DNA of 64,000 bases from Styela clava (taxonomy: Eukaryota), in NCBI RefSeq assembly GCF_964204865.1, contig NC_135251.1:20956001-21020000 (forward strand). The letters are read 5' to 3'. How positions within the stretch are numbered: the stretch's first letter is position 1; each line of letters starts with the position of its first letter. Under the pieces are notes generated by a model. It saw only the letters and a program-made list of their open reading frames with translations, made no database searches and was not told where the DNA came from. A program made the position numbers and the translations under genes. This document shows, in pieces, positions 3,001 to 35,100 of the stretch.

Positions 3001-6000
3001 GGTACGATCCAGATGGAGACCACCAGAGTAAAGCGTCATCATTTGTAATTTCAATCCAATGCAACCAGTCAGCTATACCGTTAAATTTAACATTTTCTTC
3101 ACCGTCATGTGTTATTCTTGCTGGTGCTGCTTTGAAATCCTACAACAGAACATAGAACAATGATTAAGTAAAGATTAAAATAAAATACAATAAATTATAC
3201 TAAGTAAGTATACACGCAACATTGAATATCGTAATTCAACTCATAGTTATCAATTAGCAATCGAAAAATCACAGAAGCACTTTTTGAATCTATCTAATTC
3301 TAAGTAAGTTTGATCAAAACAATGATATAATCACACTAAAGAAAGAAACGGACTTTTTATATGTTCACCTAATAAATATTACCTAATATTAATCTAATTT
3401 TACTTACAACAACGACATAGACGTCAAAGTCATGAACGAACGCCATCTTGTTACCAACAGGAGCCCACTTGATTTTTTGTATTTTATCAGCTGGAAAATT
3501 TGGAATCGTCTGCTTCGTTCTGAAACAAAACTGTTAAAATAATTTTGAGAAAGAATAATGTATGTATAAATAAATGTGAATATTTGTCATCATTGTGATT
3601 CGTACGTATAAAAAATTGATTATTTAAATATATTAAATAATAATATTTGATTTTGATTAAACATTGAGAAAATAAAAGATAACACTTTTGTATGGATACA
3701 CACAAACCTAAACAGAATGAAAAACCCAATCTTGGCTCATATGAATCTTAAAGATTATGCTTTATATTTTACGTTTCATGTCAAAAGGTACGAAATTTTA
3801 AATAAAATTTACTCACGAATCAGAAGTTGAAAACACGTCCACAGAAAAAGTTTTCATGTAATTAGCATATCCCTGAAAATAGGAATAATTTTTGACACTG
3901 ATTAAATATTTTATATAACAACGATGCATGAATGTAACAATACTAGTCAACAGTACTCAATAAAATTATACATTTTTTTTCATTGTTTATTAAACTTATT
4001 ACTTTATTGATCATTGTTTATCAAGGCAATATCCATATTTAGTATATATATGTTCGAAATTTCACAATTGTAATCTATTACATAATGACAGCAATTGTCA
4101 TCTATATAAGTTCGGATTTGTATATTCGGATGTTTTATTTTTATCATGCAAGAATCAATGCAAGAAAAAGTGTATAACATAATAAAAAAAAGTAAATGTA
4201 CACATAGGATATAACGTCAGAGATCCACTGCAATCGATAAGGGGTCGCGAAGGACTGTAACAGTCTTCGGGTCAGCGACACCTGTTGGCTGAATAATTTA
4301 GAGGGAAATTATTAAAATAATTCGTGTATTATGAAATCATTCACATTAGTTTGATGAGTTGCAAAAGGAATTTAAGTTCAGAAACCATAAAGGTACTAAT
4401 GAGCAATTCAAGAAATCACCATCGGCAACGTACAAACACAATAGAACTGTGTTGGCAAATAATATCACGTAAGCGAAGTCATATGACTACGTACTGTTGA
4501 CTAGTGTTATGTCATAATTACTCCCTTTATTATTATGATAGATTGAATTGTTGTGCTAAAACTATTCTCAATAAACTTATACCCACATCAGTATTTTCAT
4601 AAGTGATTGCTACATATTCCATATCAGCAGATATTGAATAAGATGATGGATTTGATACGCTTTTCTAAATAAGAAAAATATTGAAAAACTAAGATATAGA
4701 CACGAGTGTATTCGATCCATCTAATTAATTACAGACTGTATCATGAAAGCTATGTAGATCGATCTGACATAGCCTACCGTTAAACAGCAATCGAAAAATA
4801 GACAATTTTAAAGTCAAGCATATGGTAAGTATACGACGTACAAGTCCCATTGATGGTAAAATACATTTAGTTGAATAGAAATTGAATGAGATATGACAAC
4901 TAAATTTCTGTTCCCTTATAGATTTAGAAAATAAATGCTGTTTAGGAAATTATGAGAGTTTAGCATCCTATACAAGTTTGAGGTAGCGACGTTGATCAAA
5001 ACTAGCTTTTTTTCATTTTTATGCCTCACACAAATAATATTTTGTTACCCATGCAGTCTCGTCCAACAATACACTTTCATCTTCGCTACTTATATTTTTC
5101 TTCATTATTGACCCTTCTGGTGTTCTATACGCGTATTCAGAATCTACAATTTAGAATTTTTACAATCAAAAGCGCAATCCGCAAAACAATATATGAAAAG
5201 GGGAATTAAAAATTTCCAAATGCTGATACTACATAATAGTTGACACGTATAAAAATTGAGGTACGTAACGAATTTATTGAATATTAATAATTTCAGAGCG
5301 AAATCTTTATCTCGCCAGAGCCAATTTCAGGTCCGTTCATGCCATACACATAATTGTATTTTGAGACACGGTGATACTAAAAATCCAGGGACTATAAAAA
5401 TCCAAAGGTAAATAAGCATTTTTCCTTTATAGTCATCGAGAACAAGATTTGCTGAATGTTTAAAATGCCACGACGTCACATCTGATGGCGACAGTGACGT
5501 TAATATTCCATTGTAAACGGTCCCTTTAAAAAAGTTCAAACTTCTTGAATTGATTTATTGTGTTTGTTTGAAAAATGGGGTCTCGTGTAGTTTCGTACCA
5601 CAATAACCTCTAGTGGGCGTGGAGCAACAATTTTTTTGGCGCCCCAGAAGTATGTGCACCAAGATGGCGCACAACCTGATAACCCAAACCTGGTACACAT
5701 ATTATGTTCAGGTTGTGCGCCATCTTGGTAAACATACTTCGGGAGCACCTTTTTTATATGTCATTCCTAACCCCCACCGGACTACGTCATCCAAAAGTTA
5801 CGTCACCAAAATATGCATTGCAAGACGACCAACGCGCCTTTAAACTCTTCATTTCAAGTCTCCTGAAAACTGACTATATTTGCTTATATAGTCCAATGTA
5901 GAGACTTATCGAATCTAAACGATTTGGGCCAGGCGAAATAAGTTTGGTATGTCCCAATTTTTGGCGGTATTAAAAATAACTGGAAAATATTGAATTCACA

Positions 6001-32157: not shown

Positions 32158-35100
32158 ATGGCTCGTCTCAGACCCATTTTGGGAGTGGTGATTTTATTCG
32201 CTTTAGCAGCGTGTTTGACAATATGGAATACAAATCAACGCAGTATTAATACTGAAAAATTGGAGAAGAGAGAAATTAAAGGTAAGAGATATTTCATTTT
32301 GACAACGCCAAATCTATTGTTATTATTTACAGCTTAGAAATGCAGTCCCACTCGTCATTATTTATAATTTTTTTCAAGTTATTGTTTTGTCAAGTTATAT
32401 TTTCACTCGATCACATTTTAATGCAAATCATGACGATGTTTTTTTTTAGAATCCTACCCTATGATAAAAGCAAACAATAAAAAGTACATGACATTCGATG
32501 ATTGGCTAGAAGGGAAATTTGAGCCAAAATCGTATTATCCAGACTGGGTTTCAGGTACTTACAAATATTTGATATTCTCTCACCTTTTCTGTATATATAT
32601 ATAGTTTTGAACTGAAGATATGGTTTCTGCAAGACTAACTACTTATCCTTCTTCTATGCTTTTGTGCCGGTGGATCCGTATGCATATATTGCAAGGATGC
32701 TGTAGCAAGAGCAAAGATAACTATCCTAAGTGATTGAAGAGTCTTGCTACACACTAACACAAATATATTTCTGTAACGTTTCGTCTGACCAAGGTCAGAC
32801 TTCTTCAGACATACATAACAACTATGCATGTCTGAAGAAGTCTGATTTTGGTCAGACGGAACGTTACAGAAATATATTTGTGTTAGTGTGTAGCAAGACT
32901 CTTGAATCACTTAGTATAGTTTTGAAGATATAAAATTTTTGAATATTTTAGATCAGTGCTTCCCAATCTTTTATTTCTCGTAATTCCCTCTCCGGAGGCT
33001 TTCAGCACTTATGGCCCTTCTGTTTAGCATTCCGGTAGTATTCATAATGCTATTTTTATTAGTAGATTTCAAATTCAATTATGTTCAAACAATTCATGCT
33101 CAACAAAGGGAAAAAACTTTGTGATATAGCCTTATTAAGCAATAAAACTAGAAAGAACGAAGAGTTTTCTAGTGGAAGAAGAAGTAAAATCAGTTTTGCA
33201 CCTGACATGCTGGTCCCCTCCAACTGCTCTGTGGCCCACTAGGTGGCCCCGGGCCCCCGATTGGGAACCAGTGTTTTAGATTATTAAAATAAGTATACCT
33301 ACTCACTAATCATGCTTCTCTAATTTGTGTGAAACACAATTTTAGATTCCGAATACATTTATAAAAGAAACGATCAAGCTATATTGAAGAGGAATATAAC
33401 CAATTTAGATGAATGCGAGCTGCTTAGTTCTTCTGCTTGGGTAATTATTATAACGTGGTTTCAAGCAATATGAGTGAAACGTATTTGCTCATAAAGTATA
33501 TTCACCTGCATATATTTAAAATAAATTGTATTCAATCATAGTCAAATTTAAATTAGTGATTTCATGGTATAGGTATGGTATAGGACTCTGGAGCCGAAGA
33601 TGGTTGCTGCAACTTTTTGCATAGGTATGGTACAATTGTACATGATTAGTGAATAAAATATGAATAAAGTAACGATCAATAATGAAAGTAAAAGTAATGC
33701 GGCTTCATACATATTTCCTCAGTACATCTGGTATAGTTGATAGAATGTTTCGGCTCGTTTAGGTAAGCGACTTAACAAAACCAATAAACAAATGAAGTAA
33801 TCAGTTGTAAGCACAAAACTACACTCATTGATATCTGTGTTTGCGTTATGCATATCACTGTAAAATTAAATTAGTATTCCTTGCGAATATTATACAAGTA
33901 ACATGTTTATATTCATGACAAACAATGGTATTTTACGATAACTATAAATTATTTTGCAGCGTAGTTTGCCAAATCCGTCGACTTTTTCTGCATCGGCTGA
34001 TCTTCAATACATTGTGATTACATATGAACACATGGATGTGAGTATAGCTAATCTAATTAATGTGTTCCTGTACTGGAAAAAATTAAATTCTGTTTTATAT
34101 TGATATCAGGCATACGTGCATTACATGAAGACATTTTCCGTGGCAATTTTTAGAACCAACGATTCTTGAGTATGCGGTTACCTTTGTTTATTTGTTTTGC
34201 ATTGAGTTCTATTTTTTCCACGATTAGGTAATATAATTATTTCATTTCAGTAAATTATTTCAGTAAGATGCTGTTATATGTTAAAAACTTTTTTCCAATC
34301 TAGAATAATGCGAGTTTAATGATATATGTTCGACCTCGGGAAAAAATTGTACTCTATTCGATAAAATGCGTCCTAGCTATAGACAAGAATGAAGTAATTG
34401 AAAAACGTGTAATATTAATACAGTGTATTTTTGTAATTGTCCGCCTTTGTAAATTCGTATACAAATTGCAGAATGCCACAAACTATATCAAACTTTTCTG
34501 GCAACGGAATTCAGAACATCAAGTGGAGTTCATCTGGACACATGATGACATACGTTCACGACTTTGATATATATCTTATTTCGGTTTGTAATCGTGTAAC
34601 AATTTTTACATATTTTGTTGGTACACATTGAAGTACGAAAAATGTATTATGATATTAATAACTCTTTTGCTGCTACGGAATGAATTACAATTAATAAAAG
34701 TAAATATATAAATTTTAGGATTTTAATTTAATTTAGGACATGACATCTAATCCTGTTCAAATTACTAACGACGGAGAAAATAATGTGATTTTCAATGGAA
34801 TAACTGATTGGGGATATAACCTCATATTCAAAACACCTTTAGTCTGGTGGTCACCAAATGGAGCATACTTTGCTTATGCCAAGTACGTGAATCAATTTAT
34901 ATTTCATGCAGCATGTAAACAGCGCGAACAATATAATTTATGCAGATTGGGATTGAAGAAAATTCGTTTGAAGTATTTCAAAATCTTCAAACTGCACAAA
35001 GAAATTAAGAACGAAAATTGCCTTTTTCTTTTCTACGCACCAATGTCTTGATCATTAGGATCATTTTTGTATTGTTAAGATCGAAATAAATAGGCATTCT

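Follow-up and report, generated by a model that had tools for sequence, protein, structure and literature searches.

Genes and features at the locus

The window analysed here is a stretch of 64,000 nucleotides of the Styela clava genome (contig NC_135251.1, positions 20,956,001 to 21,020,000 of the forward strand), which consists of AT-rich DNA with no N and carries a tandem array of genes related to the peptidase DPP4. The array encodes type-II membrane ectoenzymes of an ascidian-specific branch of the DPP4/FAP lineage, within peptidase family S9B. A self-comparison of the window in six frames finds four groups of collinear short exons, with about 19 in each, referred to as genes A to D. A whole-genome Pfam scan, together with the flank, places a fifth gene (A2) just left of the window, so that the array holds five genes, four of which lie in the window (Table 1). 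Genes A, A2, B, and D were compared through their database proteins, while gene C, which has no match among the annotated NCBI proteins retrieved, was compared exon by exon.

Catalytic residues and proline pocket

Exon 7 matches PF00930 and the exon with the catalytic serine matches PF00326—i.e. a DPPIV_N propeller followed by a Peptidase_S9 domain, the arrangement of family S9B—and precomputed domains of the full-length Styela proteins also give PF00930 and PF00326. The full-length B protein aligns with DPP4 structures from end to end (E 4e-122), with FAP, DPP10, and DPP6 scoring behind. The Ser630-Asp708-His740 triad and the oxyanion Tyr547 are present in the genome exons of A, A2, B, C, and D, where they are found in the motifs G[WR]SYGG, HGTxD[ED]NV, GDxxH, and VYSGP.

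The same residues are kept in the ascidian relatives described below. Specifically, Y547, S630, Y631, V656, W659, Y662, Y666, R669, D708, N710, V711, and H740 are unchanged across the clade, and the S1 proline pocket (Tyr631, Val656, Trp659, Tyr662, Tyr666, and Val711) is intact, the exception being Tyr666, which is replaced by Trp in two Ciona paralogs. The catalytic serine is retained in every member, and the replacement by Asp or Gly that is typical of DPP6 and DPP10 is absent. Given that the triad, Tyr547, Asn710, Arg669, and the S1 pocket are conserved, post-proline serine-peptidase chemistry is expected. Residue 663 is His in all members from Styela, Ciona, and Clavelina and Gly in one further relative (P0205), and is thus neither the Asp of DPP4 nor the Ala of FAP.

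The double-Glu motif and the Arg125 hairpin

In DPP4, the double-Glu motif lies on a short helix of blade 4 and Arg125 on a hairpin of blade 2 (PMC5807507). An earlier note on this DNA, which had read the exon-7 motifs of genes A to D correctly, claimed that all four genes had lost the Glu-Glu clamp. We find that Glu205 is indeed missing, and this in all five genes of the array and in every member of the clade, so that the double-Glu pair of DPP4 and FAP is found in none of them. Glu206, however, is present in A, A2, C, and all members outside Styela, and is absent only in B and D. A Glu at position 204 is kept by gene C alone. The loss of Glu205 is rare elsewhere: EEE is found in 93 of 103 DPP4-like matches to the exon-7 profile outside the clade, and only 4 of the 103 do not have E205. 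The same note held that variation is focused on the pocket, which is a fair description, as a comparison of the five Styela paralogs ranks the six-residue windows over the motif 9–10 by variability out of 429 in the propeller.

Exon 7 of gene A aligns without gaps to human, pig, and bat DPP4 (PDB phmmer, 1n1m numbering) and reads D200, W201, L202, H203, W204, I205, E206, and I207, while A2 exon 7 reads NGITDWLHYVEITNDD, with the motif DWLHYVEI. In gene B, a clean in-frame deletion of 18 nucleotides removes exactly residues 201–206—i.e. the double-Glu helix—and joins NGISD to ITNDD. This deletion recurs in the NCBI protein models of two annotation releases, P0151 and, from an older assembly, P0001. 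Misalignment of the motif can be ruled out, given the gap-free alignment of the A exon to DPP4 and the end-to-end alignment of full-length B.

Exon 5 reads GYANYMK in A, SYVEYLR in B, AYVHYMR in C, and AYVHYMK in D. The stretch Y-A/V-N/E/H aligns to W-R-H of DPP4, and the Arg125 of DPP4 and FAP is therefore not found at its position. The hairpin is also longer in this region, by 1 residue according to phmmer or by 3 residues according to MAFFT. Three residues downstream of the Arg125 position there is a conserved Arg/Lys, which is Lys in gene A. We considered this exon-5 Arg/Lys as residue 125 itself, which no alignment (phmmer or MAFFT) supports, as it sits 2–3 residues downstream.

The YAN, YVE, YVH, and YVH previously read from exon 5 of genes A to D in place of WRH are correct as genomic readings, but the YVH of D is probably not part of the protein, because both NCBI models skip exon 5. 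The exon-5 donor of D (34166–34167) is TT, compared with GT in A, A2, B, and C, and its canonical exon-6 acceptor (34476–34477) is CC, with an AG 6 nucleotides upstream that would keep the frame. In both NCBI D proteins, which come from two assemblies, exon 4 is followed directly by exon 7, and the skipping of exons 5 and 6 takes out 56 codons in frame, or about four strands of blades 2–3 including the Arg125 hairpin. The newer of these models is also without the exon that carries Asp708. After the loss of 56 residues, D might represent a seven-bladed variant of the propeller, or an early stage of decay.

A single origin among ascidians

The full-length relatives include three proteins from C. 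intestinalis, two from C. savignyi, and two from Clavelina lepadiformis, as well as four intron-less, transcript-like contigs of 2.5–3.4 kb. The closest relatives of exon 7 outside Styela, which come from C. intestinalis, C. savignyi, and a number of fragments, read D-W-L-[FHY]-x-[VIG]-E-I-T-D-D-[DN], and every member retrieved carries the clade motif D-W-L-x-x-[VI]-E-I-T-D-D-D together with Y-A-H-Y-V-R-T in place of WRH. For example, the LHWIEI of Styela A is also found in one Ciona paralog, and E-I-T-D-D-D is found in all three ascidian orders. The signature of the clade comprises W124Y, R125A/V, a variable 204, E205V/I/Q/A, E206 (kept outside Styela B and D), and D663H (Gly in one member), along with Asp/Asn-Asp-Asp at 209–211 and the changes R356H, F357Y, and R358K.

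In two trees, 13 sequences form a single clade with a Shimodaira–Hasegawa-like approximate likelihood ratio test (SH-aLRT) support of 100 and a long stem of 0.82–0.88, inside which the Styela genes are monophyletic. In these trees, in which vertebrates are represented by DPP4 only, with FAP not included, the clade has as its sister a canonical C. savignyi sequence (H2YEQ6, DWVYEEEM), and vertebrate DPP4 is the sister group of this pair. Members of the clade are also set apart from the next matches by bit score (932 vs. 578). Canonical WRH/EEE genes persist elsewhere in the Styela genome, for example at a C19 locus (L003; QWRHSY, DWVYE/EEM, and GWSYGG).

We conclude from the clade-wide motif and the trees that the branch arose by duplication of a tunicate DPP4, and that Glu205 and Arg125 changed once and have been held in this state since the ascidian orders diverged. 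This rules out independent losses in each paralog. Earlier statements that the clamp was lost in a different way in each gene, and that the enzymes were diversified per paralog, are thus at odds with the findings that Ciona and Clavelina have lost Glu205 and Arg125 as well and that a conserved motif, x-[VI]-E-I-T-D-D-D, has one origin across ascidians; only B and D went further. Because C, the sister of B, keeps Glu206, the losses of Glu206 in B and D are two separate later events.

A difference in exon structure was also seen. In the canonical paralogs, the motif is interrupted by an intron that directly follows DW[VI]Y, or follows the first Glu in the case of L003, L006, L007, and L008; in the five genes of the array, the whole motif region is in one exon.

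Selection, expression, and structure models

Ratios of nonsynonymous to synonymous substitution rates (dN/dS), obtained from summed Nei-Gojobori counts, are 0.26 (A–A2) and 0.245 (B–C) for the propeller. In the catalytic domain, gene A compared with the A-type set of the A2 locus gives 0.086, B–C gives 0.12, and both B–D and C–D give about 0.04. These values indicate purifying selection, and every conserved exon core has an open frame. Splicing and transcription of gene C are seen in three runs (X1, X2, and X7), whose contigs contain 12 GT..AG joints that delimit its exons, and a divergent allele of this gene keeps DWGYELEI through synonymous changes. The intron-less contigs from other tunicates likewise point to expression of clade members.

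The AlphaFold2 models are confident, with a predicted local distance difference test score (pLDDT) of 88.8 for A and 88.4 for B, and a predicted template modelling score (pTM) of 0.86 and 0.87, respectively. The model of A superposes on human DPP4 with a template modelling (TM) score of 0.94 (Foldseek). The motif helix is present in the A model (residues 217–223, WLHWIEI), and the B model has a low-confidence coil at this place.

Synonymous divergence (dS) between B and C is uneven along the genes, with values of 0.11–0.14 in exons 4, 9, and 12 and of 0.35–0.57 in most other propeller exons. This patchy pattern suggests patches of gene conversion.

Further features of the array

The A2 locus contains two complete sets of catalytic-domain exons 15–19, one of A type and one of B type, and the two NCBI isoforms of A2, X1 (826 amino acids) and X2 (799 amino acids), share their propeller exons and differ in which of the two sets follows them. 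As such, this locus apparently joins a single propeller to either of two catalytic domains through alternative 3' exon sets. The double set could represent alternative catalytic domains, or a 5'-truncated duplicate that was captured as a 3' exon set.

The two types differ at Trp629. This residue contacts the P2' residue in DPP4, and is replaced by Arg (GRSYGG; S2' site) in the B-type catalytic domains—i.e. B, C, D, and A2 isoform X2—while GWSYGG is kept in gene A, in the A-type set of A2 (isoform X1), and in all other ascidian members. A-type genes have a single fused exon in place of exons 18 and 19 (L001 ~7064–6800, the end of gene A), and the protein of gene A ends in a basic tail (...KAEKKRPMRRKRK) that is not found in other members.

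Intron 14 of gene C (27500–27900) contains a very high-copy repeat with many loose ends, for which the summed contig depth exceeds 100,000 in a DNA run and reaches thousands in RNA-like runs. An element of about 1 kb is found in an intron of gene B (13479–14600) and, in the opposite orientation, near ODC-like genes (51394–52352). Its two copies have an open frame of 106–113 amino acids and share 75–97% identity over translated pieces, and it is probably a transposable element.

Table 1. Coordinates of the genes, exons, and motifs discussed in the text. Positions are those of the window unless a locus (L001 to L008) is given; aa, amino acids.
Feature	Position	Strand	Reading and basis
Gene A	1..6639	minus	exons 1-13 in window; XP_039260170, 826 aa; tblastn and exon table
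Gene A, catalytic exons	L001 9397-6903, left of window		tblastn and exon table
Gene B	8813..18389	plus	complete; XP_077965867, 790 aa; tblastn 96-100% identity
Gene C	21999..29549	plus	complete; spliced contigs
Gene D	32158..40214	plus	XP_077976200 (710 aa), XP_039258809 (744 aa)
Gene A2	L001 (C2:20946001-20956000) 4358-126 and L002 (C2:20936001-20946000) 9207-1309	minus	XP_039260168
A2, A-type catalytic set	L002 6389-4739	minus	GWSYGG
A2, B-type catalytic set	L002 3817-1309	minus	GRSYGG
A exon 5	3816..3872	minus	GYANYMKTFSVDVFSTSDS; YAN at 3861-3869 in place of WRH
B exon 5	10471..10527	plus	SYVEYLRTFS...; YVE at 10474-10482
C exon 5	23492..23547	plus	AYVHYMRTFS...; YVH at 23495-23503
D exon 5	34110..34165	plus	AYVHYMK
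A exon 7	2990..3139	minus	DWLHWIEI at 3047-3070 (W204, I205, E206)
B exon 7	11797..11934	plus	residues 201-206 gone between 11871 and 11872
C exon 7	24252..24403	plus	DWGYELEI at 24321-24344 (E204, L205, E206)
D exon 7	34737..34883	plus	DWGYNLIF at 34806-34829 (N204, L205, I206); further 2-residue deletion
B GRSYGG	16905..16922	plus	His663 codon 17082-17084; HGTADDNV 17718-17741; GDQTH 18294-18308
C GRSYGG	28502..28519	plus	His663 codon 28690-28692; HGTSDENV 29093-29116; GDEPH 29454-29468
D GRSYGG	39149..39166	plus	His663 codon 39344-39346; HGTSDENV 39564-39587; GDETH 40119-40133
B vs. C exon pair (example for dS)	15192-15335 vs. 26629-26764		
Canonical paralog exons with in-motif intron	L003 4868-4996; L004 8450-8587; L006 4284-4445; L007 6982-7107; L008 4566-4691		

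Interpretation and alternatives

Given these substitutions, we favor the view that the array enzymes are active post-proline ectopeptidases whose reliance on the free N-terminus at P2 has been weakened or re-registered, and hold it to be rather probable. The outcome would likely be a FAP-like mixed exo/endopeptidase behavior, or a strict X-Pro activity at low efficiency, and substrates would probably be chosen by rules other than those of DPP4.

The sequences show that the long stem branch swapped three residues of the negative dock for the protonated N-terminus and adjoining backbone of the substrate (Glu205 to Val/Ile, the Arg125 hairpin to Y-A-H-Y-V-R, and Asp663 to His) and gained the acidic run at 209–211, while keeping Glu206, Asn710, Tyr547, the Ser-Asp-His triad, and the six S1 residues. 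Within the Styela array, B would be the extreme case, because the S2 side of its active site should be open without the double-Glu helix. D has lost Glu206 and, with exons 5 and 6 apparently skipped, would have no Arg125 hairpin region.

The change of Asp663 points in the same direction as those of Glu205 and Arg125, because Asp663 stabilizes Glu206 and its absence permits endopeptidase activity. Specifically, Asp663 of DPP4 is buried and protonated; it forms a hydrogen bond with Glu206 and makes the potential of the site more negative. The D663A mutant of DPP4 gains weak endopeptidase activity, and FAP has Ala there (PMC7984154). The earlier note had proposed that these are not conventional dipeptidyl aminopeptidases, and this agrees with the changed dock residues, the intact triad and proline pocket, and the His at 663, but A, A2, and C retain one half of the clamp. 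The endopeptidase or N-blocked specificity that the note also suggested is a putative property. The loss of Arg125, which had been taken as evidence, is a weak argument, since bacterial DAP IV and DPP8/9 are also without the Arg125 hairpin and have an Arg supplied by another loop (PMC5807507), and since the clade has its Arg/Lys three residues downstream.

Several points weigh against weakened dependence on the N-terminus. Glu206, Tyr662, and Asn710 remain, and human DPP4 carrying E205A or R125A keeps measurable X-Pro activity, so A, A2, and C may have a weaker form of ordinary dipeptidyl activity. The Asp209–211 run and the Arg/Lys after the Arg125 position could also restore the dock. Within the array, evidence of expression comes from gene C only, over one 6-kb stretch, and the structures of A, B, and D are taken from NCBI models. 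The damaged splice sites of gene D and the newer model without the Asp708 exon suggest possible decay of this gene, and a literature search found no paper on ascidian or Ciona DPP4-like enzymes.

A stronger version of the favored reading, which is possible but doubtful, is that ascidians evolved a new specificity class in the DPP4 fold. The substrate would then be anchored by Glu206-His663 and Asp209–211 instead of Glu205-Glu206-Asp663-Arg125, in a post-proline endopeptidase or in an enzyme working in a different register, e.g. as a tripeptidyl peptidase. If so, the Styela array would explore the dock further, and B would be a DPP4 that is naturally "helix-less" and open on its S2 side.

A less probable reading, and for A, A2, and C a serious rival, is that the enzymes are conventional X-Pro dipeptidyl aminopeptidases in which Glu206, Tyr662, and Asn710, together with Asp209–211 and the downstream Arg/Lys, hold the N-terminus, the motif change being neutral or compensated. 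The invariance of E206 outside Styela B and D and the unchanged S1 pocket are consistent with this, as is the supply of Arg from a different loop in other DPP4-type enzymes (PMC5807507). In mutagenesis, moreover, Glu206 outranks Glu205 for coordination of the N-terminus; human DPP4 carrying E205A still binds inhibitors, both E205A and R125A still process neuropeptide Y (NPY), and R125A barely affects dipeptide substrates, with Asn710 being essential (PMC11020753). However, E205A leaves NPY cleavage at about 2% of the wild-type kcat/Km, a cost of about 50-fold, and abolishes the cleavage of substrates with Ala at P1 (PMC11020753). Three dock residues also changed together on one long branch, among them Asp663, whose loss lowers affinity for the amine and permits endopeptidase activity, and B and D are without either Glu. 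Furthermore, these genomes still contain a canonical paralog, which speaks for a separate role of the ascidian branch.

That the proteins retain only the fold, as noncatalytic binding or regulatory proteins similar to DPP6 and DPP10, appears quite improbable, except perhaps for D. Among the matches from other lineages, the rare losses of E205 or E206 do occur mostly in DPP6/DPP10-like fragments, one of them named as an inactive DPP10, and the newer D model is without the Asp708 exon. Yet the defining mark of DPP6 and DPP10 is a missing catalytic serine, and this residue is present here. Every member of the clade keeps Ser630, Asp708, His740, Tyr547, Asn710, and the full set of S1 residues, and dN/dS in the catalytic domain is 0.04–0.12. 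Decay of redundant tandem duplicates, or mis-joined exons and assembly artefacts, would fit the TT donor and lost acceptor of D intron 5, the truncated D models, and the fact that the B deletion falls in a motif more conserved than any other of the family, but is the least probable explanation and is largely refuted for A, B, and C, where pseudogene status is ruled out by open frames in all exons, dN/dS well under 1, and correct splicing of gene C in RNA-derived contigs, and where LHWIEI recurs in Ciona, E-I-T-D-D-D spans three ascidian orders, and two independent annotation releases carry the B deletion.

Comparison with known systems

By textbook account, it is the Glu-Glu pair, Arg125, and Asp663 that determine the character of DPP4 as a dipeptidyl exopeptidase and of FAP as a mixed exo/endopeptidase, and they are anchor points for gliptins. 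To our knowledge, there is no described subfamily of the DPP4 lineage that is catalytically intact and has a single Glu, no Arg125, and a His at 663. The ascidian branch therefore offers a natural experiment across three orders, in which selection has maintained catalysis and proline recognition through the exchange of all three determinants, and in which a canonical copy persists alongside. Such enzymes could show how specificity is re-engineered within one fold, including by a natural deletion of the double-Glu helix, and perhaps reflect peptide processing specific to tunicates. We regard them as an evolutionary and enzymological curiosity, not as a new kind of system.

Compared with vertebrate DPP4 (CD26), the ascidian enzymes have the same type-II topology, the same eight-bladed propeller and alpha/beta-hydrolase domain (with the TM score given above for A), and the same triad, Tyr547, Asn710, S1 pocket, and Glu206. 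By contrast, positions 204 and 205 are nonacidic (C keeps Glu204), Asp663 is His, an acidic run is present at 209–211, and the Arg125 hairpin is replaced and longer by at least 1 residue; B is also without the double-Glu helix.

FAP (seprase) resembles the ascidian enzymes in having a residue other than Asp at position 663 (657 in FAP), to which FAP owes a lower affinity for the N-terminal amine and its ability to act as an endopeptidase. One Ciona member is labeled by NCBI as "prolyl endopeptidase FAP-like". FAP differs, however, in having both glutamates, Arg123, and an Ala where the ascidians have His. As FAP is a vertebrate duplicate of DPP4, the ascidian clade would not be its orthologue.

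DPP6 and DPP10 are likewise membrane proteins of the DPP4 fold that diverged from dipeptidyl activity, but they have lost the catalytic serine and keep EEE, and the ascidian clade is the reverse, with the triad kept and the Glu-Glu pair changed. Lastly, bacterial DAP IV (PmDAP IV/SmDAP IV) and DPP8/9 demonstrate that the fold tolerates loss of the Arg125 hairpin. Unlike the ascidian enzymes, these keep the double-Glu motif and the Asp at 663; they take Arg106 from another loop and are strict exopeptidases.

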